Assembly (NCBI RefSeq): GCF_003918875.1
Contig: NW_025764940.1
Location: forward strand, 186,001 to 250,000
Direction of reading: 5' to 3'
DNA length: 64,000 bases
Origin: Haliotis rubra
Taxonomy: Eukaryota
The position numbers and the translations under genes were made by a program. How positions within the stretch are numbered: the first letter of the stretch is position 1; each line of letters begins with the position of its first letter. The notes beneath the pieces were generated by a model. That model searched no databases and was not told the origin of the DNA. It was given only the letters and a program-made list of their open reading frames with translations. Positions 2 to 50,882 of this stretch are shown one piece after another.

Positions 2-202
2 AAACAGGAGGAAGACACACCTTTTCAGGACATAGTCAGTAGAAATAGGCACAACTTGACCGCCCGAGGTCTGGTGTTGGCAAGTGACATCCATGGGATA
101 CTGGAGCTCAATGCTGGGGATCAGCTTCGTGTTGACATATCAAGAGTAACTCAGTCTGGCTACGAGAAGGATTGGTATTACTTTGGACTATACAGGATCT
201 GA
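2..202 (+). CDS. TNF-superfamily ligand paralog 1; 3' part of the last exon only (gene starts left of the window)
   Basis: Frame 2 reads KQEEDTPFQDIVSRNRHNLTARGLVLASDIHGILELNAGDQLRVDISRVTQSGYEKDWYYFGLYRI* (TGA 200-202). It is collinear with the C-termini of the other paralogs (SDIHVLVQLNAGDQL...DWHYFGAYII) and matches the TNF homology domain end motif LxxGDxL...YFG. Confidence 0.88.
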   Translation, partial: KQEEDTPFQDIVSRNRHNLTARGLVLASDIHGILELNAGDQLRVDISRVTQSGYEKDWYYFGLYRI

Positions 203-2169
203 ACTACTTCTTCTTGTTGGCGATTTAATAGGTCGTTTGTTATGAAGGGAACAGATTTTACATGGCTGAATTTTCTCATTGAGGTACATCTGTTATACAA
301 AACAAAACAAATAAAGACAGGCTTAGAGTATATAATGTTTATAGATCATGTTAAAGCTACCTTGAACGTTAGGTTCAACACTGCATGTTATGATCAGTTT
401 TTGTGTCCATCACATGTAAATACTAGTATGGATATGGATAGCAAAAACCTTGATCACCTTGGAAGTCCCGCATGGCATAGCGATTTCCAGAAAAAAAGCA
501 TGTAGTCCAAACTGTGTTTGATGTTTCGTTTTACTCTTGTGTGGTGAATGTTTTACGCATTTTTCCAGAATGAAAACGATGACTTCTTCCTGGAAACAGT
601 ACTCATGCGATTACTCTTAGAGATATATTCTTAAAACATAATATCCTTGGTATAGTCCACTTAAAAGATTACCTATGATATTAGTTCCTGTGGAAGGGGT
701 GCGAGGAAAGGGGCAGAAGTTTGGGTTGGGTGGTGGGTGGGGATGAGTGGTTATTCTTACATAGATACATTTATATCCATCTCTGCTCTACCACTAACAG
801 AGTCTTTACTCCTCTCTCATTATACCTCTCTAATCCCACGTTATTTCGTTCTGGGTTGGGTGTGTTGGTACATAAGCGGACATGGGTGGGGTCATAATTG
901 AATGAATGTTATAATAATCAAGTAATACAACGGCTTTGGAAACTAGAAACGGACAGTACACACATTTGATAGTCTAGGGGAATCAAAACTGTTTCCGCTT
1001 GACAAGCGAACCCGGTGTGCAAATAAGCCATTCACCGCTCCTGCGTTGACAACACACTTAACAGCTCACTGTGACGTCACTGTAACTCTACACAAAGCGA
1101 AGGCAGTAACTGCAGGTCGCATCATAGACTATGCTTAGAAAGCCACTTAATCGATACCTCATTTTTGTTATGAAACATGTTTGAAATTGCAACTTGTCTA
1201 ATATGAACATTACTTGTTAAATAGATCGGGTATTTAATTGTTACGTTTTATTATTTAATTAAAAATGCCTTAAACTCAATAGTGCTTCGGCACAAATGTA
1301 TTCTTGCGCAGCTTTGGACGACGACATATGAAGGTTAGTAAATTCAAATGTGTTCCTAACGTCAGCAAGGAATGAACGTCAGTTGAGAACAGAAAGAAAT
1401 AGTAGTTGTCTCCAAGAACGTTCCTAATTTTGGGAGGGTAGATAATGAGTGATTATTTCTCGAGGGAACGCGGAGATGAAGTAACTATTTTGACCGCCTT
1501 TTTCCTGATATCCAGAGCTAGGGCATAAGCAGAGTCGTGCGCGACTGGCCTGCATTGTTGTTAGTTGTAGTTAGTTGTAGTGTGTGCATACTCATGACGT
1601 CAAACTAACGCACCGGGTGCAGAAAATGAAATCTATATATGCTTTCCATATGTGTCCAATATAACGCATTCATACATATTCATGTATTTATTTTTATAGC
1701 GTGTTTCCTTGATGCAATACGTTTCCTCAATCAAATCAACTTTTTATCCTAGAGCTAAACAGGTTGATATGCCAAATATATGAAGGTTTCGACCATTTTG
1801 TGTTTTACAGTAACCATACAATATCTCAAAAGTAGTACTACATTTATGCTACATGTATGAAACAAAGCTTTGATATTGAATTTCTAACAAGATATATGAC
1901 GACATCTGAATGGGTCATTGAACATGATTTCCGTATTCTGCACCCGAAGCGGGAACTAAACCTCGGCGTCTACGGGAGACGTAATCTATACGTTACCTTT
2001 GTTTGTGTGTTGCTGAATGCCGCACTCAGCAATATTCCAGCAATATGGAGGCAGTCTGTAAATTATCGAATCTGAACCAGACAATCCAGTGATCAACAGC
2101 CCGAGCATCAGTCTGGCCATCCGATCCCGTTAATCGTCTTTTACCACAAGCATGGGTTTCTGAAGACCA

Positions 2170-2427
2170 TCCATGCAGGCAGCAAAAGTAATGTAAGTCC
2201 CCATGGGCCCTAGTATGGTGATCTACCTTCAGTTGTTGGCGATCAGTAGCCCAGATAAAGATATATGCTAGCTAGTTTTAGCTCAATCTGTGATAATCTA
2301 GTGGTTTACTGTCCTTCGTTGACAGGGTTATATATTATATGTATGTATTATGAATTTCGAACTAGTCACGATATGGCTGAAATATTGCCGATGTGACTTT
2401 AAAGCTTAACTTACTCACTCACTCACT
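2170..2427 (+). mobile_element. 3' UTR and tail fragment of the same LINE, inserted into a SINE-B copy
   Basis: Highly similar to 4848-5140; TSD CTGAAGACCA at 2160-2169 and 2428-2437; the host SINE-B fragment is at about 1998-2168 (-). Confidence 0.8.
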
Positions 2428-4459
2428 CTGAAGACCAATCACTGGTCTTCTGCTGAAATTAAACTGTATTCATTTATGGAAAGTTTGACATCAACACCGA
2501 ATAGTTTGGATGTTATGTATCAGTCATTGATTGTGGCTGTTTAGAATGTACAAAACATATGATTTGATGGCATTTCCTTGTCAAAATGTCAAAGAAATAG
2601 TTCCGCGCCCATGTGTTAAAGACTGGTATGATTAACAAGTGACCATTGCTGACAAGCATCTGAGCGTTTAAAAAATAGCATGACCACACATATGTGTTTT
2701 CAAACAGAAAAAATGCACTAGTTAGTGGATTTTGCGTTTTCTAAAGCATGGGTGCATACAGTGCGTGTTTGTCTGCCTGTGCGTGCGAGTTGGTCCATGT
2801 GGGCTGTTTGGATAAGTCAGGGAAAATCCAGTTTTACAGCGGGGATCCAATGAGGTACCATGCCGGAACTTTAAATAGTAGATAATAAATAACCATATAT
2901 TTCTATTATTAATATAAATCACCACAATTCACTGTAAAGTGAATGCATTATTTCTTAAGCGAAGTAGGCATTTCGTTGTTTACAAATATGCATATTGATT
3001 TAATAAATCATTTAATCTACGATCTATGTATGATTCTTAATAACCATAAAGGTTATGTTGAATGCTTCAAGTGAATATAAAACCAATAATTACTGCACAT
3101 ATTGGTTCAGGTACTTTATATATTTACAGAAACCCTAAACTGTTTTACATCTACAGAAAACCTAAACCCATAATTTAAGGATTATATGATTCATGATATG
3201 TCTCATATATACCTTACACGTGACCTCTGTTCACCCAGCAGAAACTATGTACCCGGTGAGATAAGTCATATGACTAGTAACCTTCTAGCGCCCCACAGGC
3301 AGGTTAGCCTATCCGGGATAATAATGTCCCTTATGCTGTATGCGCTTAGAGCATGTTCCAGCGGCGGGATTGCACCGCGGTATGTGTGCCCTCATTGTCA
3401 ATAACATTATACAAGCTGATACAAGCGCGCACTAGGCGTTGTTTGACCTTTAAGTGGGTCAGAGAGAAACAAGGCGATGCAACGTTTACTCGCTTTATTT
3501 TTTACAGAAAAGATCAACATCTCACGTCATTGACGTTAAACACAAGCATGTACTAAATCATTGCATCAACATCGTCAGTATTATGTCCAAAGGAAATTAT
3601 AAGCACAAATGAAGCGAACTATATATCTATTTTTATCTATTGCATCCTTTTTATGGTTACATAAAATTACTGCTGGTCGCAAGCAATATGTGAAACAGGT
3701 AAGGATTTGTCTTTCTAAATTCATTTTGAAACATTCAGAATAATCAATAAATTCTTCTAATCCAGATACACGGTGTACAGAACAATAAGATTTCTCTGTT
3801 CATGGATCCAACAAAGGCTGTGCTGTATGAACAATCAGTTATAAACAGTCGTGTTGCATTGACTGTCAAGTATGTAATCACATATTCCCCGGCAAGTAAG
3901 AAATGTGATAAATTTTATAACAATGGCACAGGAAGTAATTTGATTTCACCATATCAGTTATAAAGCGGCACTATTTCTTGTCGCGCTATCTAGGTTATAT
4001 GCTGCGCAGTTGCAAAACTTGTCACAGGCTAAATAAAGCGGAACTTGTCATAGGCTAAATAAAGAGGCAGGCTGGCATTAAATATGTATGGACTTGGGAA
4101 AAACCAGAAATGTCTAAAAATAGGAGGCGAACCTATTGTGGTGATATGACTCCATGAAAACTATTTCAGTTGTATTAATAGATGTGTATCGATCGTGTGA
4201 ACATTGCGACATTGTGACAGCTGCTACCTAAGACGGATAATGTTGTACTAAACATAGCGCAATTTCGGAATGCCTTTTAGATTTGAATTCGCTCTCCTAT
4301 GTTTAGGTCTCGCGTGGTAGCAGGGACCACATGTTTGCATTGCTGTGGATTCGGGCTTGTTATCGTCAAGTCATTCCTGAACGTAGATCGTGTTCTCTGA
4401 TTGATAAAAGTATTTGAGTGAACGAATGATGAAATATTTGAATTTATAACGTGACGTTC

Positions 4460-5140
4460 AAGCATGTCCTGCTTGACTGTGTTGAGTATTCCATCACAAG
4501 GGATATCTCTTTCAAATAACGAACTATGAAGGATATTTTTAATAATGTCAGTTCTCATTTAATTATTGCATTTTTAAAAGAATTAGATTTGTTAAATGAT
4601 TTGTAAATAGATAAATGGTATTTTAAACTTGGTAGTATAAATTTGCAACTGCGATTGTTAGTTGCTGTATCCTCGTAGGGGGTTAAAGTATCGTGAAATT
4701 ATTGTCCTCTTGAGAGAAGTCCCAAAACTTTCAAAGTTAAATGTTTCCTTACCCGATTTTTTTAAACGTAGTATATTTGTTCCCATTCGGCTAAACTTTT
4801 CCTACAATCGCCAGCGGCTGAAGGGATGGTGTAAATCAAACTAGGGTCCATGCAGGTAGCAACGGCACTGTAAGCCCCATGGATCCTAGTATGGTGATCT
4901 ACCTTCAGTTGTTGGCGATCTATAGCCCATTTTTACATTATATTGTCCAAAAATAATTTTCTACTTTTACAGATATACACTAGCTAGTTTTAACTCAATC
5001 TGTGATAATCTAGTGGTGTTATTGTCCTTCGTTGACAGGGTTTTATATATCATATGTATGTATTATGAATTTAGAACCAGATTTGGTCACGATATGGCTG
5101 AAATTTTGCCGATGTGACTTTCAATCTGAACTCACTCACT
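4460..5140 (+). mobile_element. 5'-truncated LINE (I/Nimb-type): ORF2 C-terminus, 3' UTR and tail
   Basis: Flanked by a 14-bp TSD ATAACGTGACGTTC (4446-4459 / 5141-5154). Starts KHVLLDCVEYSITRD...KDIFNNVSSHLIIAFLKELDL, matching the fragment at 23142-23400. Ends GTCACGATATGGCTGAAATTTTGCCGATGTGAC...(ACTC)n. Confidence 0.85.
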
Positions 5141-5204
5141 ATAACGTGACGTTCGACTCCAAATGACGCAATTAGGGCTGTATCATCACAGTTATTATTA
5201 AATC

Positions 5205-5312
5205 AGGGTCCCGTTCCTCAAAGCAATCGTAGTACTAAGACAGTCGTAACTCACGGCCTTTAAAATAGATTTACGACTGTCGTAGAGCTACGATCGCTTT
5301 GAGGAACGGGGT
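5205..5312. mobile_element. Short palindromic MITE
   Basis: CCCGTTCCTCAAAGCAATCGTAG...CTACGATCGCTTTGAGGAACGGG inverted arms; a related end at about 45195-45224. Confidence 0.6.
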
Positions 5313-5669
5313 GCCGGGAGACTTCCTAATTTCTTGTCATATGTAACTGTTTAGGTGACCCAGTGATGAATAATGCTAATTTTGGAAATAGACTTGGTGT
5401 CGTGTAAAATCGATATTCCCCGTAAAAGACATCCTTACATGTTCACATGTTCATTTGGTGTTTTTGAAGATACATTTGCATCAATCAAATCTATTTAGAC
5501 ACTGACCTGACCGGTAGTCGAGTTATTTTCCTTTGTTAAAACAGGATCATGAGTTCTCTTGAAAGACAAAGACATTTGTATGCTGTTACTTAAAGTGGTG
5601 ATTCTTGTGACCGCTACGCAGATATATAATCAACAATAACCAGCAATTGTACATGACATATTTCTAAAA

Positions 5670-6205
5670 GAGTCCCCGTGGTTCCAATTATGGTGATACC
5701 ACTTCAGTTGCCGGCGATCTGTAGCCCGTCTTTATGCTGTAATGTCCTAAATAGCATGTGCATATATAAATAGCACAATAGCATATATTAACTTACATGC
5801 AAGTCCCTAACTGTGATATACTTGTCGTTTTCTGTCTTACAATACAGTAAACTCCCTGGATCTCGAACTCCAAGGGACCATCAAGACAGGTTCGAGAAAT
5901 CGTGTGATTCGAGATTGAAATACATTGTATATATGCACATTGTGTACATAGTACCACATACATTGAACTTGTATACGACAACGTAGAAAAAAACAAATCT
6001 CTAGTTTCATTCTTTTCACAGTAATCGTCATAATCATCATACACACGCTACATATTTAAAAGCATAAATTATGTGTAAATACAAACTGTATTCTAAAAAT
6101 TTGTTACATGTATATCATCCTAAATTATTTAATTATGGCCTGCTTTTGTCACGATATGGATGAAATATTGCCAAAGTGACTTTAAATTTTAACTCACTCT
6201 CTCAC
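5670..6205 (+). mobile_element. Older LINE 3' UTR copy interrupted by a Tc1/pogo-like MITE end (about 5843-5920)
   Basis: Similarity to 4870-4930 at the start and the same tail at 6148-6205; TACAGTAAACTCCC...TCGAG terminus inside. Confidence 0.5.
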
Positions 6206-6279
6206 TAATAGCTAAATTTGTCGTTTTATGGTTATATGCTAGTTTTATGTGATTAGTTGTTTTACTCTTCTTTGCAAAC

Positions 6280-6449
6280 TGACTGACTGACTGACTTTAG
6301 TTTTACGCCGTTTTTAGCAATATTCCAGCAATATCACGGCGGGGGACACCAGAAATGGGCTTAACACATTGTGACTATGTGGGAAATCGAACCCGGGTCT
6401 TCGGCGAGACGAGCCAACGCTTTAACCACTAGGCTACCCCATCGCCCCT
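6280..6449 (-). mobile_element. tRNA-derived SINE-A, full length
   Basis: A box (TAGCCTAGTGG), B box (GGTTCGATTTCC) and tail CCGCCGTGATATTGCTGGAATATTGCT...GGCGTAAAAC plus microsatellite; TSD TTCTTTGCAAAC at 6268-6279 / 6451-6462. Confidence 0.9.
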
Positions 6450-6632
6450 GTTCTTTGCAAACAGGTAAGTATACTAACATTAGTTTTTATTCATTCATAA
6501 ATTCATACATTTTCATAGTCACGATATGGCTGAAATACTGCCGATGTCACTTTAAATTTAACTCACTCACTCACTATTTTATGTCCAATATCGTTTTAGA
6601 GACAAATGTCCGCACTGGCCAAATGAAACATC

Positions 6633-9094
6633 ATGCGATGGAAGAAAGTCGTTGTGGGCGTTGTGCTCATCCTCAACATAGCTGTGGGAATCGCAGTTAT
6701 TGGTGTTGTGGTGACAATCCAGCAGGAAGGTTATCCCTCTGCCACTCTTCGGAGCACTGCAGATAATTTGAAGAAACACCTCGAAGAAGTACGAATTAAA
6801 AAAAATATATATTGATTAAAATTCTATTAGAGAGAATTATAACCTTTTTATTCAGTCGTAAATGAAATATTGTCGGCTGCATTGAAAGTTTGCTGCAAAC
6901 AGAAGACCTGGACTAAAAACTAGTCTCTGAAATGAACATATTTTACAGACAAAAACACTTCATAATGAAAAATATAATGACAGGGAGCCCTGAGACCATA
7001 CTCTAGACTTGCATGGGCTTTCTTGGATATAGTAAAACTTGTTTCAGGGTCTGTATGACAGACTATCAGAAGACATTACATTAATGATTTGGTTCAATAT
7101 TAATATATTAACTCTAAGTTTCTATTTTTCGTTGTTGTTTGTTCAAAACGAAAGTAAATATAATAAAAGTGATCGTGTGTTATCACTGAGAACTGATGTA
7201 TCTATGAGGCTGAAAATGTATGAAAACAAATGTCGTTTAATCTACAAATGGAACAGCATGTCAATGATAACATAATGATTATTTCAGACTTATGCAGATC
7301 TTCGACAGACCCTGCTTCAACAACCTCCCAGTAAGTGGGTCTATTTTGCCCTAAGCTCGGTTCCTGTGAATGTTAAAGCCATCGCTTACAAAAATGAAAC
7401 ATGCATTATCAAATCTTATTTTCTCATTTATCAACAGAGTTTATCAATATAAACTTTTCATACAAGGTACATGGTATAGTTTTTTGTAGACAAGTGTAAA
7501 GGAATGTGATATTATGAATGTTTCTATTGATACAGGTCCACAACCGATCGCGACACAAGAACACTGGAATATCCTGAAACCTATCGCATTCTTTACGGGA
7601 CTTGAATTTGATATTAACAAGGAAGGTATGTATCTCTCATGTTGTCGACATATTGTTTTCAGGTTAACATCGTTACGTTGCCGGGGAGATGTCTGTCCAG
7701 CATGCTACCATTCAGCAACTATGAGCATCGAGAAATCATTTGTAATCTTGTAAATATGCTCTATTTATATGCCTAACTAGAGCTTTCAAAACATACTGGT
7801 GACATGTTATGGTTGAAATATTATTTCCAAACTTGACTTAACAGTCACAAAAACTGTGTCCAATTCAGTTTCCCCTTTTCGACATTTAGTATTTACACGT
7901 GTTAATAATTGCCTGTATTTCGCCTTGTGTCATCGGTTTGGAAGAACGCGCTCGCGTATTGGCAACACCTGATGCGATCACTATTTGATCTGTTTGTAGT
8001 TTAAATTGCTTGGGATTGTGTACAATGTTCTTGTCACTTCTTATGCAGTAAAGCAAACTTTTAACCAAGGTATCGGGGACCGAAGGAATCGGATTGTTGA
8101 CGTCAAAGGACAAGTGCTTCATCCATGCTTTTCCATGGGTCAACAGTCTGATTAAGTTATTTCTTCTAAATAGAGTTACCATAACTATAAACAGAGGTTT
8201 TGTTTGTTTTTTTATGTGCTCGTACCACACACACAATTCAAATCCTGTCTCACATGTATTGATATTATACGACCGACTCCGTGGTGTACTGGTCAGAGCG
8301 TCCCCCCGGAGAGCGGAAGTTCTCGGGTTCGATCCGGCCGCGTCATACCAAATGACGTTAGAATATGGTACTTGTTGGTCTCTGTCTGGCGCTCGGCATT
8401 AATGGGTACAACAAGGACTGGTAGGCTAGGAGTCAGTATAATGTGTCTGAGTGGGGTATTACTGCAGTATGGTATCTCAGTGAACTAGCACTATAAAACC
8501 AGCTTAATTCTGGGCTAGTACAAGCAGCCACACAGACGCATGCACGTCGTCATATGAGCGAAACAATCTAAAGTACGACGCTAAACCCCATTTCACCTCA
8601 CATGATATTATACATCCTTGGTCACCGCACTTAATCTGTAATACTGACACACTTGTGCCTTCTTAACAGATATGCCTTCATCCACTGCAGTCAGGAACTG
8701 GGTGCCTTTCGTTGCACCAGGAGGCCGGCAGTACTTGTACAATGGTATGAAGTATGAAAACGGGAGTATTGTGGTCCCGGCCGCTGGAATATATGCTATA
8801 TATGCCCATATGAAATTCTACACAGAATACAATCATCGCTCAGATCCCGAGTTAGATTTCCATCACAGCATAATAAGATACAATGCCGCAAATCAACAGC
8901 TGGAAACAGTATCGAGGAACATAGTGACCGAGAACAAGAACGATATCATTGATGGATCAAGTCTGGAATACTCCAGTGATATCCACGTGTTGGTGCAACT
9001 GAACGCTGGTGATCAGTTAATTGTAAATGTGTCGCATTCGGAACAGTTAAAGCCTGACAGGGATTGGCATTATTTCGGAGCTTATATTATTTAA
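6633..9094 (+). CDS. TNF-superfamily ligand paralog 2; type II membrane protein, about 237 aa; exons 6633-6788, 7288-7330, 7536-7625, 8670-9094
   Basis: GT-AG introns with phases 0,1,1 join into one open frame. It contains a TM segment VVVGVVLILNIAVGIAVIGVVVTI, a stalk, strand A LKPIAFFTG, then VRNW...NGMKYENGSIVVPAAGIYAIYAHMKF...LNAGDQLIV...HYFGAYII, which are typical TNF homology domain motifs. Confidence 0.9.
8271..8602 (+). mobile_element. tRNA-derived SINE with a Meta-domain-like core, in intron 3 of TNF paralog 2
   Basis: A and B boxes (TGGTGTACTGG, GGTTCGATCC); core GTCATACCAAA...ATGGTACT...CTGGCGCTCGGCATTAA; TSD TGATATTATAC at 8260-8270 / 8603-8613. The Meta assignment is from memory of the core motif. 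Confidence 0.75.
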
Positions 9095-13558: not shown

Positions 13559-13751
13559 ATGATTTAATTAACCAAGGCGACTTCATGTAACCATAACAAC
13601 CGACAGCAGGTAAATAATGCTGACCAAATGGAACGCCTATATATGATAAGCATGTTCCTGGAAGTTTCAAACGCTTTCGATATGAATTAGCTTAACGGAC
13701 TCATAGAAAAACCCTAAAATGGCGTAGTTATATCTAATTTCTCTTCATTGG

Positions 13752-13908
13752 AGTAAGTGAGATTAATTTTACACTGCTTGTAGCAATATGATAGCAAGAC
13801 GGCGGGCGACACCAGAAATGGGCGTCACCCATTGTGTCATGTTTGGAATCGAACCCGGGTCTTCGGCGTAACGAGCGAACGCTTTAACCACTTGGCTACC
13901 CACCACCT
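13752..13908 (-). mobile_element. SINE-A copy
   Basis: Matches the SINE-A consensus. Further degenerate or partial copies at about 18088-18220(-), 23470-23558(+), 40192-40280(+, TSD TCCACAACACTC), 41085-41170(+) and 41365-41532(+). Confidence 0.8.
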
Positions 13909-16344: not shown

Positions 16345-17243
16345 TGGGAACACCCTCAAATTTGATAGTCATATATACACTTAAACGTGGTGAGGTCACT
16401 TATGCTCTAAGGTAAATGCAACTTTTTGTGTGCTTAATGGACACTTTAAACGACATGTTGGAACATGCAGTGAAGCAACTGATTCAACATTCGTTGAGTT
16501 TGAGTGAAATGAAACACTGAAACGACAAGGGTGCTGAAACACACCAGCACCATGTTTGATTCAAACACAACAGCTTAGTGCATGTGGAAAACTTCCCATG
16601 CAGCCTATGGCAACTGGACACTGGCAGTTGTGAATCGGTTCCGAAGGGCTTGGGCCTCCTTGATGCTGACCTTTTTGTATGTTTTGGTCTTCCAGAGCGA
16701 CGGCTGTTCTGTACTCTGCCAGTGGCCTGAAACCTGTCCCCCAGTCTGTGAATGACAGTCTGAGACACCTGTAGATGGAGAGCCACACTTCTTATGGATT
16801 CACCATCCTGTACCCATGCAATGACCCTGCTTCTGTTGTGGGCGCTTAACGGTCTGTTCCGTGGCATGGTGAAGAAGTTGTTAGGGGCTTCGATACTGTC
16901 AGTAGCTTCTTTTAAAGGAAACGTTGCCACAAGCTGCATGGGAAGTCTGTCTTCCACATGCACTAGGCAGTTGTCTTTGGTCGTTTGAATCAAACATGGT
17001 GCTGGTGTGTTTCAGCATCCTTGTTGGTTCAGTGTTTCATTTGGGCGTTTGAATCAAACATGGTGCTGGTGACATTGTTTTTAACAATGTTACATTTCAA
17101 TCAAACTCAACGAATACTGAGTCAGTTGCTTCACTGCATGGTCCAACATGTTGTTCAAAGTACCCATTAAGCACACAAAAAGTCGCATTTACCTTAGAGT
17201 ATAAATGACCTCACCACGTTTATCAAATTTGAGTTTGTCCCCA
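16345..17243 (-). mobile_element. Tc1/mariner deletion derivative with long (about 270-bp) inverted repeats
   Basis: Arms at about 16345-16615 and 16922-17243. The internal reading frame MPRNRPLSAHNRSRVIAWVQDGESIRSVALHLQVSQTVIHRLGDRFQATGRVQNSRRSGRPK (ATG 16867) is a Tc1 paired-like HTH plus GRPR motif. Confidence 0.88.
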
Positions 17244-23110: not shown

Positions 23111-23141
23111 TGCATATACATGTATCTACAAAACAGATCAA

Positions 23142-25127: not shown

Positions 25128-25284
25128 NNNNNNNNNNNNNNNNNNNNNNNNNNNNNNNNNNNNNNNNNNNNNNNNNNNNNNNNNNNNNNNNNNNNNNNNN
25201 NNNNNNNNNNNNNNNNNNNNNNNNNNNNNNNNNNNNNNNNNNNNNNNNNNNNNNNNNNNNNNNNNNNNNNNNNNNNNNNNNNNN
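25128..25284. other. Assembly gap (N run)
   Basis: Run of Ns. Confidence 0.99.
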
Positions 25285-28600: not shown

Positions 28601-28638
<38 letters not shown>

Positions 28639-28944
28639 CTGACTGGGTACAACTAGTTCACATTTATATTATCTTGAGAGGAGCTAGTACTGTAATATGC
28701 TTGTGTTGTGCGGACACATGGCGCCAGACACCCCCAGATGTTACATTCATTCATTCATTACTTCATTCATTCATTCATTAAACTAATACAGTACAGAACA
28801 CGTAACAATTCCAATGATTTGCTACAGCATCGAATTTCCCATGAAATCAGTTATTATAGCCCACTTCACCCCCAGGCTTATAGGTTATGGATAAACCGTG
28901 ATAAAATTTGTCAATCCATGTCATACATACTCTCGTTGGGCTGT

Positions 28945-29110
28945 AGGGGCGGTGGGGTTGCGTAGTGGTTATGTAAAGCCTTCGTACGTCTCGCCGAAGA
29001 CCCGGGTTTGATTCCCCACATAGGTACAATGTGTGAAGGCCATTTCTGGTGTCCCCCGCCGTGATAGTGTTGGAATATTTCTAACAGCGGCGTAAAACTA
29101 AACTCACTCA
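28945..29110 (+). mobile_element. SINE-A, full length
   Basis: Same consensus; TSD CTCGTTGGGCTGT at 28932-28944 / 29111-29123. Confidence 0.9.
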
Positions 29111-29509
29111 CTCGTTGGGCTGTTCCATAACCGTAATTTATACTTGTAGAACGTGAGCCGAATGTATGTTGCTTTCACAAAGTACGTAAATACGAAATCT
29201 GTGATGATCAATGTAGATAATAATGGATCATGTTAATAAAACCGCATAATAATAGAATATTGGTAATGAAGAGGCTACATTGGAAGCCTGCTAAAAACAT
29301 TCTTACCCCTGTCCCAGTATCAGGTCGAACTCCCCTGGGAATGCACCACCAAAGAGGATTAATAGTCACTTAACCGTTTCATCCTATCAGCTGAGTGAAC
29401 AGAGGCACATAATAGAACACAGGATGATAATAGAATTTGGCCAGTTTCTTTAGCATTGTTACATTAACTTTTTACTACCAATGTATCATTTTTACTACTA
29501 ATGCTAGGG

Positions 29510-32441: not shown

Positions 32442-34654
32442 ATGGATTGCATCGAAGGACATAAAGCGTTAAGAACGAAACAGCTTCAGCTGGCTGGCTG
32501 TGCTTCACTTCTGCTGTTGAACATAGCAGTGGGTATTACGGTTATATGCCGGGTGGTGTCCAACAACCAAGACACACAGGTTACGAACAACAGATTGATG
32601 CAAGAAATAAACAGGGTAAGAAGAAACCTTCAGCATGATTTGGAAACTCCAGAATATGTTACCAAGAATGTTAGGCGTATTTTTTTCTGTAAACCTGTTT
32701 TTAGCATTCATTTAATTGTTGGATATTTTCGACACCATACCGTGATCCACTCATTTTTTAAATATTTAAAGAATACCCTGTCTTGACAGCCCTCAGAAAC
32801 AAATTTATTTTGGTGTAAGGCGATAAATAGATGTGAAAATTCCATCAATGGATCAATGAATATCGGTAATAACACCGGGTGTCGTGACCAGCCCTACCGG
32901 TAAAGTATAAGTGAGTGAGTTTAGTTTTACGCCGCACTCATCAATATTCCAGCTATATGGCGGCGGTCTGTAGATAATCCATAGGATTTCTATACATAGT
33001 TTTGCTGCAAGCATCAATGATTTAATGTTCATTCAGTGTTGCAGATTTATGTTTGCATGCCATGATTCATTCAGTTTGTAAATATAAAACGCTTGTGCCA
33101 AAGAATACCTAGTCTTAAATATCCTCACATAAAGATTTCTGTTTGGTGTAAAGAGATAACTAGGTGTAAAACGTCCATGAATGAATTACTTACTACAGGT
33201 ATTCAAGAATAGGTTAAGCATGTCAGACCCTACAGCTAAACTAAGGCACCAGTTTGATCATTTTACAGATATACGATGAGCAACTGGAGAAAATGAATGA
33301 TGATGATAATGGTGATTCCAAACGTAAAGGTGAGCAGATTAAATCATAACAATTCTTATTTTCTAATCGGATATATCCAACACATTCACCTGCCCAGTTT
33401 GTATTGGAAATAAACATGTTAAAGGTTTTCTACCGTCGCAAAAGCTGATAGAAATAATGAGTTCAAAGACGAGTGAGTGAGTCTGGTTTTATGCCGCTTT
33501 TAGAAATGTTCCATCAATATCAAGGCGGGGGACACCAGAAAAGGGCTTCACACGTTGTATCCATGTGAATCGGTCCCTGACCTTCGGCGTGACGAGCGAG
33601 CTCTTTAACCACTGGGCTACCCCACCGCCCCGTTCAAAGACGGAGCTGTGTTGTTGACTGATATGTTATGATGACTGTCCTACAATTGCCTCTGCCTGTG
33701 TATTGACAGCTATGTTTATACATATTACAGGTGGAAGGAAACCGACCATGTCGCCAGCCTTCTTGAACCTCCTGAAACCTATAGCATACTTTACTGGACT
33801 GGACTTCGATCGATACATTGGTAAGACATTCATTTCATCCTACCTATCCACATACGTTCGATCTGCAGTACTTATATGACATTTATAATGACATAAGTGG
33901 CGTGAAGATCCGGATCAGAATTGGTCTTCAGAAGTCCACGCTTATCTCAAGAGGCGATTAACGGGATCGGGTGGCCACGCTCGCTGACCTGGTTGAGGCA
34001 CCTGGGCATCCCAGCTGCTTAGATCAATGCTCACTTGACTGTCTGGTCCAGACTCGATTACTTTCAGACCGCCGCCGTGTAGCTGCAATATTGCTGAGTG
34101 CGGCTTCAACAACAAACAAAAACTCAAATATAGCGAACGGTAAGTTTTCAGGGTGTGTGTTTATCTCACTGCAATTAAGGAATTACAAGCAATAACTCCA
34201 CCAATTCTATGAACAATTTATCATTCCAGAGAATCAACATGACACAGCCATAAGAAACTGGGTACCCTTCGTCGGACCTGGAGGGCGACAACTGAAGTAC
34301 AATGGAATGCAGTATGAGCATGGCAGCATCATAGTTCCCGCCACGGGTGTGTATGCTGTGTACAGCCATGTTAAATTTTACACAGAAAAAAATCGTCGGG
34401 GAGACACCGAAATTGAGTTTCACCATTCCATAATGAGGTACAATGCATTAAAACAGACGAGTAAACCTGCACTTGCTGACACAATGTCTGAGAATAAGAA
34501 CGACGTCATTGACGGAGGCTCTCTGGAATACTCCAGTAACATCCATGGACTCCTGCAGCTCAATGCTGGGGATCAGCTGCTTGTTAAAGTATCACATCTG
34601 AAACCTCTACAGCACGACCGGGACTGGCATTACTTTGGAGCATACATGATTTAA
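32442..34654 (+). CDS. TNF-superfamily ligand paralog 3; about 249 aa; exons 32442-32615, 33269-33329, 33731-33820, 34230-34654
   Basis: GT-AG introns with phases 0,1,1. Exon 3 (90 nt) and exon 4 (425 nt) are identical in length to those of paralog 2. TM LAGCASLLLLNIAVGITVI; LKPIAYFTG; IRNWVPF...GSIIVPATGVYAVYSHVKF...LNAGDQLLV...HYFGAYMI. Confidence 0.9.
33472..33631 (-). mobile_element. SINE-A in intron 2 of TNF paralog 3
   Basis: Same consensus; TSD GTTCAAAGACG at 33461-33471 / 33632-33642. Confidence 0.9.
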
Positions 34655-35033: not shown

Positions 35034-35065
<32 letters not shown>

Positions 35066-38920: not shown

Positions 38921-39445
38921 TTACTATGTTATATGTGTTTTAACAGTGAATAGCACTAGTTTTGTATGTTTACACGAATGCGTGTATGTTTCGATGTGCT
39001 TGTGCTACTATGTACTACTATTTACTATGGGTATGTTCAGTTCGTCATGTGTGACATTGCATCTAATGCTAAAACCCTATAGAAACATGTAATATTAAAA
39101 ACAATTAAATCGGCGAAGAGAACGTATATGTTTATTTGTGTATTACTGACCACATGTTAAGGAAAACTTCAATACGATTCCTGACAGATCATTGCATTAG
39201 AAAGGACGATTAGCAAGAATTTAAGATTTAGGATCAAATGAAACTCCATGACATCAATGTTGAGAAGATTTAATATTTGTCTCATACTTTATGTCATCAT
39301 ATCAATTGAACATCTGTTCTGTTGATGTACAGTTTTCATTATCGCAAATCACCTAACATTTAAGTCCATAATCACTTTGTCGGTCTCTGGACATGAGGAG
39401 AATTTGTTCACATGATTAAGGATATGTTTCCTTAAGGATATGCAC

Positions 39446-39736
39446 CTACTCGTCGGGGTCTCCCGACAGCTTTGGGTACACACCATACAAGAAGATTAAT
39501 CTTGTCCCGAAAGCTGCTGCTAAAGTTCCCAGGATCATATTCTTTCCAATGGAACCTCCGCCTGTAGTGACTGCAATTGCGATAACGATAAAATCAGCGG
39601 CAAATCCAATACCAGCACTCTTCGCCCGATCCTTCGCCATGTCTTCATTTTCATCTTGAAGGTAAACAGTAGCAGAGCGCAGGTCATAGCATGGGCCTAC
39701 AATCGGGATGTGCTTGAACAGTTCATGGAAGGTCAT
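39446..39736 (-). CDS. Small (96 aa) uncharacterised Gly/Ala-rich protein with two hydrophobic segments; single coding exon
   Basis: The ORF MTFHELFKHIPIVGPCY...SAGIGFAADFIVIAIAVTTGGGSIGKNMILGTLAAAFGTRLIFLYGVY is preceded 13 nt upstream by a good acceptor (ttttctgtttcag, exon starts 39749). A candidate non-coding exon ends at CAG|GTATTG (40838), with TATATAAA at 40914-40921 and AATAAA at 39131-39136, all on the minus strand. Confidence 0.65.
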   Translation of the reverse strand: MTFHELFKHIPIVGPCYDLRSATVYLQDENEDMAKDRAKSAGIGFAADFIVIAIAVTTGGGSIGKNMILGTLAAAFGTRLIFLYGVYPKLSGDPDE

Positions 39737-41533
39737 TTCCCTACTGTCACTGAAACAGAAAATATTTCATCACACTATTGCAAAAGGACGTATTTTTGCT
39801 CGCCATTTATTAATATCACTTGAGTCGTATGCTGATGAACGAGCAGGATCCGGTCTTTTTACAAACTGCACCTCGTAAAGACATTAGCTTGTAGATGTCT
39901 TGAACAGATGAGGTTTGCAAGACATTTACAGTTTTGTAAAGGTGGTACTGCGATCGACTTATATTATATGAACAACAGGCTATATATTTATTACCAATAT
40001 GTAGACGCTTTACCCCATGTCATACAGGTTGTGGTGCAGTACTGTTAACCAAATTGTATGTTAACAGAACAAGCAGATGCCTCACATCACCCTGACTTGT
40101 ATTCCATGCACATTACCGCTAAGATGCGGCAAATGTTGATCGTAATCATTTTTAATCAGATATGATAATGGTATGAATCTCCACAACACTCGTGTGAAGC
40201 CCATTTCTGGTGTCCCCAGCCGTGATGTTGCTGGAATATTGCTAAAAGCGGCGTAAAACCAAACTCAGTCAGTCAGTCAGTCCACAACACTCATCCGCAT
40301 TTGGACGTATGAGCTGTAGATAACATTCTTGAAAGGCATTTAGAAGTTGGACGATCATGAATACACACACTTTACCGTACAAATGAAATGATAAACAAAT
40401 AGTCCTGGCATTATGCAATATAATACATGAACACTTTTGACCTCACCCCTTTGCGAATAAAGTCTCGATCATGTCTGTTCAAAGAATAGGTTGACGAATA
40501 ACGGAATGTTCCTCTCAAGCGCCTTCTTATGGCTGGGGGCTGGGGGTGCTGGTGGGGTTGGGTCACCGTTAAGGGGGTCGTCAGTTTTGTTCTGGGGAGG
40601 TAGGGGGTCATCAATTCGTACATGACAGGCGGGAGTTCACTAACTTTGTACATAATTTTCAGGGGGTGTCATTCGCAGTTTACATGCTTCTCCTTAAATA
40701 TCACCCACCTCCTCCCAGCCATAAATTATTAACTGTCCCTCATATAACAATTGTGTTGTAAGAGCAGCAACGCAATGCAGCTAACGTTTGAAGCCAGCAC
40801 GACAATGCTATAAAACATCTATTATACATAACAATACCTGCAAACCCCGTTCCACAGCCACGGGTAACCTCTGTCATGTGCTGAGACGATTGTACAATTG
40901 CGAGTACAATGTGTTTATATAAAAGAGTTGATACCAGGTGTTCGAGAAAAGGTGAATTAATTCTGTCCTAACCTCTAGCATTCTGTCAAAAAATACATGC
41001 AAAGATTAGTCACTTGTACAACTGAATCGGGAGGATATGGCACAATTCTAAACGGCGAACTGCATGGGGCATATTTTTTTGGGTACAAAGTATGAAGAAC
41101 ATTCTGCTGTCCTCCGCCGTGATATTGCTGGAATATTGCTAAAAGCGGTGTAAACCTATACTCACTCATTCACTAGATACGTTCATGCTACACCTTATAG
41201 GTTGGTTAAGTGTCATGACAGAACAAGAATATGAAGCACTACTTTTATTAAAATCAGATACACACCAACAAATAAAATATCTGTATTCCATTCGTCGTTA
41301 TTTACGGTTGAATTACTTGAGATATCCCTGAAACACAATGCTGAGGTGATATTCATAACACACATAGTGGTTAAGCGTTCGCTCGGATCCGCAAGATCCG
41401 GGTTCGATACCCCACATGGGTACATTGTGTGAAGCCCATTTCTGGTATCCCTCGCCGTAATACTGCTGGAATGTTGCTAAAACGGCTTTAAACTAAACTA
41501 AGTAACTAAGTAACTCACTCACTCACTCACTCA

Positions 41534-43878
41534 CCGTATGTCAATACCCGTTACCTACCTTGTTATCGTCTCCGTTACCCACAGTGCATCATCCCGTTAC
41601 CCACCCTTTATCACCTCCGTTACCCACCGCGTATCGTCTCCGTTACCCACCCTGTATCATCTCCGTTACCCATCCTGTATCATCTCCGTTACCCACCCCG
41701 TATTGTCTCCGTTACCCACCCGTATCTTCTCTGTTACCCACCTTGTTATCGTCTCCGTTACCCACAGTGCATCATCCCCGTTACCCACCCTATATCACCT
41801 CCGTTACCCACCGCGTATCGTCTCCGTTACCCACCCTGTTTCATCTCCGTTACCCACTCTGTATCGTCTCCGTTACCCACCCCGTATCGTCACCGTTACC
41901 CACCGCGTATCATCTCCGCTACCCACCCTGTATCATCTCCGTTACCCACCGCGAATCATCTCCGTTACCCACCATGTATCATCTCTGTTACCCACCCTGT
42001 ATCATCTCTGTTACCCACCCTGTATCATCTCCGTTACCCACCCTGTATCATCTCCGTTACCCACCATGTATCACCTCTGTTACCCACCCTGTATCATCAC
42101 CGTTACCCACCGCGTATCATCTCCGCTACCCACCCTGTATTGTCTCTGTTACCCACCGCGTATCATCTCCGCTACCCACCATGTATCATCTCTGTTACCC
42201 ACCCTGTATCATCTCTGTTACCCATCCTGTATCATCTCCGTTACCCACCGCGTATCATCTCCGCTACCCACCCTGTATCATCTCTGTTACCCACCGCGTA
42301 TCATCTCCGTTACCCACCCTGTATCATCTCCGTTACCCAACCTGTATCATCTCTGTTACCCACCCTGTATCATCTCCGCTACCCACCCTGTATCATCTCT
42401 GTTACCCACCGCGTATCATCTCCGCTACCCACCCTGTATCGTCTCCGTTACCCACCATGTATCATCTCTGTTACCCACCCTGTATCATCTCTGTTACCCA
42501 TCCTGTATCATCTCCGTTACCCACCCTGTATCATCTCCGTTACCCACCCTGTATCGTCTCCGTTACCCACCCTGTATCATCTCCCTTACCCACCCTGTAT
42601 CATCTCCGTTACCCACCCTGTATCATCTCCGTTACCCATCCTGTATCATCTCCGTTACCCATCCTGTATCATCTCCGTTACCCATCCTGTATCGTCTCCG
42701 TTACCCACCCTGTATTGTCTCCGTAACCCACCGTATATCATGTCCGTTACCCACTTTGTTATCGTCTCCGTTATCCACAGTGCATCATCCCCGTTACCCA
42801 CCCTGTGTCGTCTCCGTTACCCATCCTGTATCGTCTCCGTTACCCACCGCGTATCATCTCCGTTACCGACCCTGTATCGTCTCCGTTACCCACCGTATAT
42901 CATGTCCGTTACCCACTTTGTCATCGTCTCCGTTACCCACAGTGTATCATCTCCGTTACCAGCCCTGTATCATCTCCGTTACCCACAGTGGATCATCCCC
43001 GTTACCCACCCCTTATCACCTCCGTTACCCACCGCGTATCGTCTCCGTTATCCACCCTGTATCGTCTCCGTTACCCACCCTGTATTGTCTCCGTTACCCA
43101 CCGTATATCATGTCCGTTACCCACCATGTATCGTCTCCGTTATCCACAGTGCATCATCCCCATTACCCATCCTGTATCGTCTCCGTTACCCATCCTGTAT
43201 CGTCTCCGTTACCCACCGCGTATCGTCTCCGTTACCGACCCTGTATCGTCTCCGTTACCCACCGTATATCATGTCCGTTACCCACTTTGTCATCGTCTCC
43301 GTTACCCACAGTGTATCATCTCCGTTACCCACCCCTTATCACCTCCGTTACCCACCGCGTATCGTCTCCGTTATCCACCCTGTATCGTCTCCGTTACCCA
43401 CCCTGTATTGTCTCCGTTACCCACCGTATATCATGTCCGTTACCCACCGCGTATCGTCTCCGTTATCCACCCTGTATCGTCTCCGTTACCCACCCTGTAT
43501 TGTCTCCGTTACCCACCGTATATCATGTCCGTTACCCACCATGTATCGTCTCCGTTATCCACAGTGCATCATCCCCATTACCCATCCTGTATCGTCTCCG
43601 TTACCCATCCTTTATCGTCTCCGTTACCCACCCTGTATCATCTCTGTTACCCACCGCGTATCGTCTCCGTTACCCATCCTGTATCATCTCCGTTACCCAT
43701 CCTGTATCGTCTCCGTTACCCACCCTGTATTGTCTCCGTTACCCACCGTATATCATGTCCGTTACCCACCATGTATCGTCTCCGTTATCCACAGTGCATC
43801 ATCCCCATTACCCATCCTGTATCGTCTCCGTTACCCACCGCGTATCGTCTCCGTTACCCACCGTATGTCAATGTCCGT
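41534..43878. repeat. 23-bp minisatellite (CTCCGTTACCCACCCTGTATCAT), about 100 copies
   Basis: Direct reading; the translated ORFs have a 23-aa period equal to three units; followed by (GA)n at 43880-43922. Confidence 0.97.
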
Positions 43879-44831
43879 TAGAGAGAGAGAGAGAGAGACA
43901 GAGAGAGAGAGACAGAGAGAGATTAGTGGATGTGTCACTGTTGTGCAATGGGTATTTCAAAAGGTAAAGTTCAAAGTTGAATCAACGTTTGCTTAATCAG
44001 ATGTTTTGTTCAATTTTCGGTTTCATCAGGAGAACGGGTATTCTGGATCAAGAAAATCACCACAAGTTCTTTGTAAGCATAGCAGTCGCATTCGTGAGCA
44101 AATCGTCATATTACATGACAAGTCGAACGGAGAATCGACGCAGTTGATACAATTGTCAAATGTCGACATTCATGCATCATCCACCTTTATCGATTAGGGG
44201 TGGGTCTTTGCAGGTTACCGGATATGAAGGGGTGCTTGGTGAGTCAATGCTCAACTCCACGCATAGTTGTTGGCCGCCAAGCATTGTTGGGAGCATTTGA
44301 CTAGCGACCGATTCACTGCAGAGAGCTTCGCGAATGGGATATTGTTGCATGGTGGCTGACATAAGGTATGCATGGGTACGTTCTGCATCGATAACTGATT
44401 CTGGGTGGTATGACCACACTCTTGTATTCACCATTTACCAGTCGTGTACATGACAATTGTACCTATTCTGTCAGCAGATTACATGGGAAAATATGTCCGA
44501 AAGTCACCAGAAGAGGGTATCTCAGTGAAGGTCACCTTGCCTAATTCCAACTGCGCAGTACATGATGGCCATGCAACTATAACCTGTAGTGATCCGTTAC
44601 TGGGATAGACGGGTTAGCATGTGCTTTAGATTAGGAACATGTTATTGCCAAGTAATTTGAATATGTGATCCTATGTTATATCCTATGTATATCGACAGCA
44701 GCATGTTTGAGATGCCCATGTTACTCTGAAACATACATCACTAAGAGGCAGTAAATGCATAATTTGGCAAAGGTTTGTATGCTAGTGTTTAAATGTTTGA
44801 GAGGGATCCAAACATATTTTAATTTTTCAGC

Positions 44832-46595
44832 ATGGGTTGTGTACGAGGACGGACGGTATTGATTACAGTAACTGTTTCCATGGTTATTGCGAACATTGTC
44901 GTCTTCGGCGTGGCTGTGTATTTGGCGTCAACGAGCCAGACGGATCGACAGCCCGCTGCTGAAGCCCAGAGATTCAAAGATTACATAGACAGCAAGGTGT
45001 GTGGATCGTGTTTACTTAATAGTGTACTTGAAACATTTATAGGTTTAATCTGGCATATATGTGTTCGTACCGACCACTGAAATAGAGGTTATACCCTTAC
45101 GTGTAACTAGGAGTTCGTTATTATTGCATCGTCAATGTTATTGAACTGAACATTCGTAAGCTTATGATGAACTATAGAGTAACGACGGGTCCTAATGTTA
45201 CGAACGCTTTGAGGATCGGGACCCTTTAACTCTTTGCTTGAGTGTAGGAATGTAGTTCATATTTGACCCAATGATCAGATTTACCCTTTTCTGCTACAAG
45301 ATATGCTGCTTTCATTAAAGTCAACCTAAATGATAAACCGTAATTCTGTTAACATTTTCATGACTTGAGATAATTATATCTGCAGATAGCCGATGCAGTG
45401 AAACTGGCAGAGAAATCATTCAAGGACAACAGTTCTGAAATTAAAGGTATGATGAACATTATCAACACAATCACAAAGAAAATGTCACGTGAGACGCAGG
45501 TATACATGGGATTTAAAATGAAAAATCAGGTATTTGAAAGAAATAGGTAGCTGCATATACTCGATTCCACAGATGACAATTTCAATTTGCTTTGTAGATG
45601 CACTGGATTTGACTTTTCTGAACCTCTTGAAACCCATGGCTTTCCTTCATGGAGTGGGTCCCTTTGACGAGTCAGGTATGTATGTGAGGCATGTGTAGCT
45701 GCTAAAACATGTATAACCTATGTGTACATGTAGATGCATAGACAGCTGGTTTGTCATATTTCAAAGTTAGTGATAATTTGTAAAATACGATTAGGGATAT
45801 TCAAATTGCCATGTGTCCAGCGTAATCATCCGTGAAGATCTGGGTTAGAGTTGATCTTTAGCAACCCATGCTTGTCATAAGAGATGACTAACGGGATCGG
45901 GTGGTCAGGTTGGTTGACACATGTCATCGCACCCCAATGTGGTATATCGATGCTCATGCTGTTGACCACCGGATTGTCTGGTCCATTATTTACAGACCGG
46001 GGTAATATAGCTGGAATATTGCTGTGTGTGGCGTTAAACAACAACCAATCAATCAATCCAGCAATTATAACAACATCTGTTCATGGACAGTTGTATGTAT
46101 AGTCAAAATAGATAAACTATAACTTATAAATGTCTTACCCACTCCGGTATATAGTTCTATAAACCTGTCAATATCACTTCAGACATTCAAGGTGGAAGAA
46201 CTACAGTTCGAAATTGGATAACAACAGATGGTCTGAAGAAGGCCGAGCTTCTTAATGGGATGAAGTACGCCCGTGGCAGAGTCATAGTCCCTGAGAGCGG
46301 CTGTTACCGGGTAACTGTTAGTGCAATGATGCACTATGAGGGTACAAGGGGACATTGTAAAACCTTCTCACTTGACGTCATCCGATATAACGCAAACACA
46401 AAGAAAGAAGAAGTCATATATCGTGAGAATGAAGAGATGTGTCCTGAAACCAAGGACGGGGCTTCTGACTACCACAGTCATTTCGTCGGTCTTGTAGAGT
46501 TAAATCCTGGAGATCAGATATTTGTCGTTGTATCAGATCTGTCACTTCTAAAGACACACAGAGACGACCATTACTTTCAAGTTTGTTTAACTTAA
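44832..46595 (+). CDS. TNF-superfamily ligand paralog 4 (divergent); about 238 aa; exons 44832-44996, 45386-45446, 45598-45675, 46183-46595
   Basis: GT-AG introns with phases 0,1,1; exon 2 is 61 nt as in paralog 3. TM VLITVTVSMVIANIVVFGVAVYL; LKPMAFLHG; VRNW...NGMKYARGRVIVPESGCYRV...LNPGDQIFV...HYFQV. AATAAA at about 47012. Confidence 0.88.
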
Positions 46596-50876: not shown

Positions 50877-50882
50877 GTGTTA

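Follow-up and report, generated by a model that had tools for sequence, protein, structure and literature searches.

An old, genus-wide tandem array of TNF-superfamily ligand genes in the abalone Haliotis rubra

Several genes resembling ligands of the tumour necrosis factor superfamily (TNFSF) lie one behind another in a stretch of the genome of the blacklip abalone, Haliotis rubra, which raises the question of when they arose: in a recent burst of duplication confined to this species, or earlier, in an ancestor common to living abalones? The stretch analysed, C50:186001-250000 (64,000 nucleotides, termed the window; coordinates below are those of the window unless prefixed with a contig), holds three TNFSF ligand genes in full and the end of another, all lying on the + strand. 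A preliminary description of the window had taken them for a lineage-specific cytokine cluster built by serial duplication. The array is real, its genes are already in RefSeq, its family is known in abalones, and it is old and genus-wide; we consider it very probable that it was built on C50 before the Haliotis species split and that it is still turning over.

Gene models and extent of the array

Five intact copies, numbered 0 to 4, make up the array, and all of them have four coding exons separated by canonical GT/AG introns in phases 0,1,1. Copies 2, 3 and 4 are complete in the window. Copy 1 enters it only as the last 202 nt of its last exon (1-202, + strand, stop at 200-202), visible as an open reading frame at the left edge; the gene is completed just to the left, at C50:184664-186202 on the + strand, with coding exons of 108/55/93/410 nt specifying 221 aa.

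Copy 2 (+ strand) begins with a 156-nt exon (6633-6788) comprising the ATG, a 5-residue tail, the transmembrane anchor and the start of the stalk, followed by the phase 0 donor GTACGA; this exon is 79% identical to exon 1 of the H. asinina protein P0015. Exon 2 (7288-7330), 43 nt of stalk, is the best AG/GT candidate (TTTCAG / GTAAGT), matching P0015 residues 50-70. Exon 3 (7536-7625), 90 nt encoding LKPIAFFTG, and exon 4 (8670-9094), 425 nt encoding the TNF homology domain and the stop, are respectively 85% and 86% identical to P0015. Copy 3 (+ strand) is laid out in the same manner: 174 nt of tail, anchor and stalk (32442-32615), 61 nt of stalk (33269-33329), 90 nt with LKPIAYFTG (33731-33820) and 425 nt of TNF homology domain and stop (34230-34654). 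Copy 4 (+ strand) follows with 165 nt of tail, anchor and stalk (44832-44996), 61 nt of stalk (45386-45446), 78 nt with LKPMAFLHG (45598-45675) and 413 nt of TNF homology domain and stop (46183-46595). Once spliced, the models of copies 0, 3 and 4 reproduce RefSeq proteins P0010, P0001 (249 aa) and P0024 (238 aa) exactly, and H. asinina orthologues cover all four exons of the other two—P0027 on copy 1 and P0015 on copy 2. Support for the predicted junctions comes from this match to RefSeq and orthologue models. For copy 1 a single public gene call was found, P0026, which is truncated, at 163 aa, and lacks the membrane anchor. These models bear out the description of three complete genes and one partial gene on the + strand with phases 0,1,1, and the exon sizes given in it are exact: copies 2 and 3 share exons of 90 and 425 nt, and copies 3 and 4 one of 61 nt.

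That the array might reach beyond the left end of the window proved correct. In addition to the rest of copy 1, the left flank holds the fifth intact copy, copy 0, another 49 kb out, and then, after roughly 107 kb more, a sixth, broken copy (C50:21-31 kb; 92% identical in DNA), so that the order along C50, on one strand, is broken copy, then copies 0, 1, 2, 3 and 4. The sole assembly gap in the window, a run of 157 N at 25128-25284, is intergenic: the stop of copy 2 lies 16 kb before it and the ATG of copy 3 lies 7.2 kb after it, and it interrupts none of the claimed exons or frames. Searches of the gap flanks and the rest of the window for further TNF exon fragments found none, all matches outside the 13 exons having E > 0.1. 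An Rfam search gave no match, and the window ORFs at 4277-4558, 39446-39736 and 56233-56592 matched no Pfam family. The long ORFs at 41538-43996 are artefacts of a 23-bp minisatellite. In the H. rubra genome as a whole there are at least 41 TNF-domain matches, grouped in clusters.

Protein plan and predicted trimer

All copies exceed the curated cutoff (23 bits) of the Pfam TNF family, PF00229: in the window, copy 2 scores 57.6 bits (8672-9091), copy 3 51.4 (34307-34651) and copy 4 39.4 (46260-46592), and the genes completed from the flank score 45.2 (copy 1) and 53.5 (copy 0). The intact genes encode proteins of 221-249 aa with a C-terminal TNF homology domain and a predicted type II membrane topology. 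A hydropathy test of the five copies picked out one hydrophobic 19-mer in each, within residues 6-35 (mean Kyte-Doolittle value 2.26-2.84), preceded by an N-terminal tail of 5-16 residues in which K and R are at least as numerous as D and E. The stalk is 42-58 residues long and contains no cysteine in copies 0, 1, 2 and 4; the single cysteine counted in copy 3 sits at the end of the membrane anchor, not in the stalk. A C-x2-C ... C-C module was sought between anchor and TNF domain in the five copies, and none has it. The proposal that these are TNFSF-type type II ligands therefore stands, on the Pfam match, the single N-terminal anchor, the stalk and the C-terminal domain. The C1q domain family, which belongs to the same fold superfamily and has a signal peptide and often a collagen stalk, does not fit: Pfam matches TNF only, the N terminus is a membrane anchor, and the stalk is devoid of collagen repeats.

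Exon 3 supplies the LKPxA[F/Y] strand of the TNF homology domain, and the large last exon supplies the remainder. Most of the motifs offered as subfamily signatures were recovered as described: NI in the transmembrane segment and RNW are present in copies 2-4 (copy 1 carries RGW instead), and LNxGDQ and a YF end, the latter as [H/Y]YF, are found in all four copies represented in the window. LKPxAFxxG needs widening to LKPxA[F/Y]xxG, which is present in all, copy 3 having Y for F.

RANKL and TNF are the nearest solved relatives (E 5e-8 to 4e-6). Modelled as a homotrimer, the copy-3 ectodomain scored 0.83, against 0.22 for the best control; contacts agreed between runs in at least 69%, and partner pLDDT was at least 75. 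The pass mark had been benchmarked on solved proteins, being reached by 21 of 30 solved as one-chain pairs and by none of 23 solved as single chains. The TNF homology domain of copy 3 is thus predicted to form a homotrimer, though the model may here be reproducing TNF trimers already solved. The predicted interface includes residues 94-100 (LKPIAYF) and 243-249. Vertebrate TNF genes, too, have four exons, the last of them large, and encode a first strand of the form KPxAH. Sequence alignments of the abalone copies with solved TNF and RANKL chains begin only past the LKPxA[F/Y] strand, so this strand may correspond to the vertebrate first strand, as its place in the predicted interface would suggest.

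Age of the array and its turnover

The last exons of copies 3 and 2 are 67% identical over 136 aa (E 2.6e-70), well above chance, and copy 4 shares 27-32% full-length identity with the others, making it the most diverged, as had been thought. The pairing of copies 2 and 3 as closest applies inside the window only: over their full length copy 2 is 52% identical to copy 3, and copy 0, to the left, is nearer at 61%.

Origin by serial tandem duplication, as first suggested, is shown by the common strand, the common exon plan and the placing of all copies in one clade. In the trees, each copy is joined first by an orthologue of another species (H. asinina, H. diversicolor, H. rufescens or H. cracherodii) and only then by other window copies (supports 98/95 to 100/100); each of copies 1-4 is represented by orthologues in two to four further species of the genus. 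All copies lie in a clade of 29 tips made up of Haliotis alone (support 100/96), to which Gigantopelta is sister, and their TNF domains form a clade separate from the C2077 and C456 clusters. Bootstrap values for the order in which the groups of copies 0, 1, 2 and 3 branch are only 74-81. Gene order is kept as well: in H. rufescens a copy-0-like gene and copies 1 and 2 stand in tandem, with a copy-3-like gene following after 36 kb, and in H. cracherodii copy 4 comes 7 kb after a copy-3-like gene. Synonymous divergence between paralogues is saturated, that between orthologues being 0.6-1.0. The copies are not recent duplicates, because they pair first with their orthologues, their order is kept and paralogue dS is saturated. 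The term lineage-specific accordingly applies at the level of the genus or deeper and not to H. rubra. The preliminary description had set separate orthologue groups against its own reading; such groups do exist, yet all of them fall within the one Haliotis-only clade.

Read strictly, a lineage-specific cluster would be a burst of duplication peculiar to H. rubra. Two loci do have a recent look—a duplicate of copy 0 on contig C513, at a dS of only 0.047 to copy 0 and thus evidence of recent turnover in the copy-0 lineage, and the broken copy at the far left of C50—but the trees and the synteny refute such a burst for copies 0-4, and as an account of the array we find it very improbable. Still less credible is an assembly artefact, in which haplotypes, collapsed or duplicated, would have been placed in series. 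The assembly is fragmented (2855 contigs), there is a gap inside the array, and the copy-0 locus recurs almost unchanged on C513; against this, the proteins of the window copies differ from one another by 48-73%, far above allelic divergence, and the order recurs in chromosome-scale assemblies made independently for two other species.

Whether all five copies are in working order is a separate matter. The intact copies are under purifying selection: dN/dS against orthologues is 0.16 for copy 0, 0.22 for copy 1, 0.26 for copy 2, 0.14-0.16 for copy 3 and 0.49 for copy 4. It might nevertheless be that at least one intact-looking copy, copy 1 or 4 being the likeliest, is unexpressed or decaying. 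Copy 4 evolves faster than the rest, copy 1 combines a long branch with a shorter domain, the altered RNW motif and a truncated gene call, and a clearly broken copy lies on the same contig. Every frame is open, however, all splice sites are canonical, and copies 1 and 4 have intact orthologues elsewhere with dN/dS below 1, so that we regard decay as unlikely, if less so than either a recent burst or an artefact.

An old array that continues to turn over remains the reading we prefer. Serial tandem duplication would have followed the split from the Gigantopelta lineage and preceded the divergence of living Haliotis species, and turnover would have continued since, leaving the young duplicate on C513, the decayed copy on C50 and the extra co-orthologues present in H. 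rufescens and H. cracherodii. Alternatively, C513 may be an overlapping haplotype of C50, since the two are collinear at 91-98% around copy 0; however, no match to the copy-1 region was found at the end of C513, and the C50 DNA in between consists entirely of multi-copy transposable elements. Intron loss was considered for sister copies on contig C437, which present open frames of 209-217 aa, and rejected: the frames are open intron sequence, with an LKPxxHF exon about 250 nt upstream.

Known relatives and implications

Over the TNF domain, copy 3 shares 81% identity with the published TNF-alpha of H. diversicolor (E3UTM8, here P0003), which has the same type II layout and a similar length, 250 aa to the 249 of copy 3. 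It groups with P0003 and H. asinina P0002 (99/95), and copies 0, 1, 2 and 4 fall in other groups. By these sequence comparisons copy 3 is to be taken as the orthologue of H. diversicolor TNF-alpha; copies 0, 1, 2 and 4 are uncharacterised members beside it. What had been published as a single cDNA is here one member of a conserved five-gene array. The AbTNF-alpha sequence of H. discus discus (De Zoysa 2009) was absent among the matches found, and a full-text literature search found no paper describing this array. In gill, bacteria and LPS are reported to induce abalone TNF-alpha (De Zoysa 2009, cited by both PMC12367993 and bioRxiv 10.1101/2024.07.27.603686).

Oysters and scallops, too, have expanded TNFSF families of up to 27 paralogues per species (bioRxiv 10.1101/2024.07.27.603686), their many paralogues having arisen, as in H. 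rubra, by tandem duplication. Unlike those expansions, the abalone subfamily is confined to Haliotis in a set of 1.84 billion cluster representatives, in which the closest sequences from other taxa are 32-39% identical. The vertebrate TNF / LTA / LTB cluster, RANKL, FasL and TRAIL have in common with the abalone copies the Pfam TNF domain, the type II anchor and the homotrimer (here a prediction), and TNF / LTA / LTB are likewise in tandem; the similarity is only distant (E about 1e-6 to 1e-8), and the abalone expansion is independent.

By analogy with the family and with published abalone TNF-alpha, the products would assemble as homotrimers through the TNF homology domain. They would sit on the surface of haemocyte or gill cells or be released from it, and would act in immunity and the response to stress by way of TNF-receptor-type proteins, roles that the five retained paralogues may have partitioned or diversified. 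More speculatively, and with little likelihood in our view, paralogues may mix into heterotrimers, like vertebrate LT-alpha / LT-beta, giving a combinatorial set of ligands for putative TNF-receptor clusters; a related idea, which we hold equally doubtful, is that the four-exon plan with phases 0,1,1 is the ancestral bilaterian TNFSF structure.

The general picture of TNFSF biology is unchanged, because tandem expansion of the superfamily in molluscs was already documented. What the analysis provides for one abalone TNF-ligand subfamily is a validated map, with exact exons, orthologue groups and conserved order for its five intact genes. Since the published abalone TNF-alpha is one member of this array, expression and knock-down studies of abalone immunity, whether to Vibrio, herpesvirus or heat stress, need paralogue-specific assays.

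The TNF-ligand genes of the window

Four mutually similar reading frames lie on the + strand of the window, at 2-202, 8648-9094, 34196-34654 and 46155-46595, belonging to the TNF-ligand genes here termed copies 1 to 4, copy 1 being partial; copies 3 and 2 are 67% identical over 136 aa (E 2.6e-70). All three complete frames pass Pfam TNF (PF00229) at 57.6, 51.4 and 39.4 bits (cutoff 23), and the TNF-family assignment of the preliminary description was thus right. To model the genes, acceptors and donors were read directly and candidates for the small exon were enumerated; database searches were run per exon or with stored proteins, and exons were joined for frame checks and protein comparison. 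Copies 2-4 each comprise four coding exons on the + strand, with GT/AG introns of phases 0, 1 and 1: 6633-6788, 7288-7330, 7536-7625 and 8670-9094 in copy 2; 32442-32615, 33269-33329, 33731-33820 and 34230-34654 in copy 3; and 44832-44996, 45386-45446, 45598-45675 and 46183-46595 in copy 4. The spliced copy-3 product is identical to RefSeq P0001 (249 aa, LOC124274928 X2) and that of copy 4 to P0024 (238 aa, LOC124274966 X2), while the four copy-2 exons are matched by an H. asinina orthologue, P0015, whose 237 aa are also the length of our model. Exon models, Pfam matches and RefSeq identities show the array to have been described correctly and precisely, down to its exon sizes (copies 2 and 3 share exons of 90 and 425 nt, and copies 3 and 4 one of 61 nt). 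A pyrimidine tract and AG 2-35 nt upstream of the ATG, in copies 1 to 4 and in orthologues of other species, would imply a putative non-coding first exon in these copies.

The sole run of N in the window, 25128-25284, lies 16 kb past the copy-2 stop and 7.2 kb before the copy-3 start codon, and is crossed by no claimed exon or frame. Searching its flanks by tblastn with exons of all five copies (copy 0 being an intact gene left of the window) gave no TNF similarity, and relaxed tblastn with every exon of the five gave no TNF exons in the window beyond the 13 known (all E > 0.1).

The remaining sequence is rich in repeats. Just upstream of copy 4, 41548-43862 is taken up by about 100 copies of a 23-bp minisatellite unit (83% matches), strongly skewed towards C over G; the ORFs of up to 809 aa at 41538-43996 are its spurious products. 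A 31-bp repeat is present in 18 copies at 47702-48259, and a 56-bp satellite (about 125 copies, 95% identity) fills 56970-64000 to the window end; the next 10 kb of the contig (L004) hold no such array, hence the satellite ends close to the window edge. A repeat of about 170 bp lies interspersed, in either orientation, at 6276-6449, 13751-13901, 28944-29113, 33471-33634, 41365-41516, 50880-51049 and 52651-52820, also within introns of copies 2 and 3, on very many H. rubra contigs and, at 81-90% identity, in H. rufescens; it has no Rfam or tRNA match and looks SINE-like. The 169-aa ORF at 16484-16993 on the - strand, whose matches of helix-turn-helix transposase type are weak (HTH_29, 24 bits, under the cutoff), is probably the remnant of a transposon lying between copies 2 and 3.

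Extent of the array and its relatives in the genome

The array had been thought perhaps to extend left of the window, and it does. A genome-wide Pfam TNF scan of the H. rubra assembly (1.38 Gb, 2855 contigs) yielded five matches on C50, the contig in which the window occupies 186001-250000. The whole of copy 1 spans C50:184664-186202; it has exons of 108, 55, 93 and 410 nt and a 221-aa product validated by H. asinina P0027. Among public gene calls a single one was found for this copy, P0026 (163 aa), which begins within exon 3, without the anchor. Copy 0 (C50:134124-137163; exons of 144, 55, 93 and 425 nt) is identical to RefSeq P0010, 'tumor necrosis factor-like'. At about C50:25.9-30.6 kb (about 4930-9642 of L044, C50:21001-31000) there is a sixth, broken copy akin to copy 0: exons 1 and 3 are intact and resemble those of copy 0, as do the initial 36 codons of the last exon, but the last exon is interrupted there, its remainder lying 2.5 kb on, degenerate and with an in-frame stop.

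The spacer between copies 0 and 1, 3.5 kb in H. rufescens, is 47 kb here and full of young multi-copy transposable elements. Two of about 2.6 and 1.9 kb in C50:146001-156000 (L003), whose copies on dozens of contigs reach 98% identity, represent recent transposon activity inflating this spacer. In intron 1 of copy 0 (about 3720-4540 of L006, a stretch of the C50 flank) a repeat of about 97 bp stands in about eight tandem units, where the broken copy and a near-twin of copy 0 on C513 each have just one. This near-twin (C513:1856001-1866000, L045, at 4253-6391) is intact and recorded as RefSeq P0011 (isoform X3, 207 aa). Its identity to copy 0 is 97% in protein and about 94% in DNA, introns included, with dS 0.047 and dN/dS 0.27; it is allelic to copy 0 or else a segmental duplicate of recent origin. 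Duplication in the copy-0 lineage is still going on.

As many as 27 TNFSF paralogues are reported from a single mollusc (bioRxiv 10.1101/2024.07.27.603686). The scan of H. rubra gave at least 41 TNF-domain matches in several clusters, on contigs that include C2077 (15 matches, 409-860 kb), C456, C437, C2358 and C256. Genes on C437 and C42 form the sister group of the C50 array; they share its exon-3/exon-4 split and carry an LKPxxHF motif. From the C2077 and C456 clusters the TNF domains of the C50 array stand apart as a clade of their own.

Lineage and age of the array

Word searches with copies 3, 4 and 1 returned Haliotis proteins only. Since the claim that the array is lineage-specific depends on the absence of outside relatives, an exhaustive search was used; it returned 63 of 1.84 billion cluster representatives at E ≤ 1e-3, the best named outsiders being amphioxus FASLG, Gigantopelta aegis and Mya arenaria (32-39% identity). 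Separately, P0030, a 6458-aa protein of the beetle Brassicogethes aeneus with 26 short matches to the copy-3 TNF domain (query 46-77, 31% identity, E 3e-36), appears to be repetitive or mis-predicted, not a TNF ligand.

In a first tree of TNF domains (54 rows; two support values per node) each copy pairs first with its orthologues, or for copy 0 with the C513 twin: copy 4 with H. asinina P0025 (100/99); copy 2 with P0015 (98/95), then H. cracherodii and H. rufescens (99/91); copy 3 with H. asinina P0002 and an H. diversicolor protein named TNF-alpha (99/95); copy 1 with P0027 (100/97), then H. cracherodii and H. rufescens (100/100); and copy 0 with its twin (100/88), then five H. rufescens genes (96/92). 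A second, careful tree, with 55 rows added from the exhaustive search, has a Haliotis-only clade of 29 rows (100/96), comprising the copies on C50, C437, C42 and C513 and those of other abalones, with two Gigantopelta proteins and one other as sister (73/93). Copies 0 to 3 form one clade (99/96), the order among their groups being unresolved (supports 74-81), and the copy-4 group is separate (100/99); copy 4 was rightly singled out as most diverged.

Gene order is shared too. On H. rufescens chromosome JALGQA010000009.1 a copy-0-like gene and the copy-1 and copy-2 orthologues stand in tandem on one strand within 15 kb, with a copy-3-like gene about 36 kb further on; in H. cracherodii the copy-4 orthologue comes 7 kb after a copy-3-like gene, and the two share a strand. 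Nei-Gojobori dN/dS, computed on the last exon only, is 0.16, 0.22, 0.26 and 0.16 for copies 0 to 3 against H. rufescens (dS within 0.59-0.99), and 0.14 for copy 3 (dS 0.84) and 0.49 for copy 4 (dS 0.60) against H. cracherodii; all copies are therefore constrained, copy 4 least so. Nine of the ten paralogue pairs have a dS that exceeds 2 or is undefined, and the 1.1 of copy 1 versus copy 3 is still higher than in any orthologue comparison. The origin of the array thus long predates the Haliotis species splits. Its origin by serial tandem duplication was correctly proposed; 'lineage-specific' holds in the sense of a Haliotis-only clade, but is wrong if taken to mean recent, given the orthologue pairings, the synteny and the paralogue dS.

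Protein architecture and predicted assembly

Each of the five products has an N-terminal tail of 5-16 residues with at least as many K/R as D/E, one hydrophobic segment (mean hydropathy 2.26-2.84) containing N-I (N-V in copy 1), and a cysteine-free stalk of 42-58 residues. The motifs beyond it are LKPxA[F/Y]xxG (exon 3), RNW (replaced by RGW in copy 1), L[N/D]xGDQ and, at the C terminus, [H/Y]Y[F/V]; a TNF domain with four cysteines is peculiar to copy 4. Among solved chains, RANKL (E 5e-8) and TNF (E 4e-6) are closest in sequence, with alignments starting past exon 3; the LKPxA[F/Y] strand would correspond to the first strand, KPxAH, of vertebrates.

A homotrimer is predicted for the copy-3 ectodomain (P0001:84-249, modelled as three copies), scoring 0.83 against 0.22 for the best control, with at least 69% contact agreement between runs and partner pLDDT of at least 75. 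Of 30 proteins solved as pairs of one chain, 21 reached the score mark, against none of 23 solved as single chains; this calibration was made on two copies rather than three, and a pass can reflect memory of solved like complexes. The modelled interface includes residues 94-100 (LKPIAYF) and 243-249, which would make two of the signature motifs predicted trimer contacts.

As cited in PMC12367993 and bioRxiv 10.1101/2024.07.27.603686, De Zoysa 2009 reported the cloning of the first molluscan TNF, from disk abalone, and its induction in gill by bacteria and LPS. The genes of the array are already annotated and the family is already known; the only novelty lies in describing a conserved set of five genes, in an array around the gene for abalone TNF-alpha.
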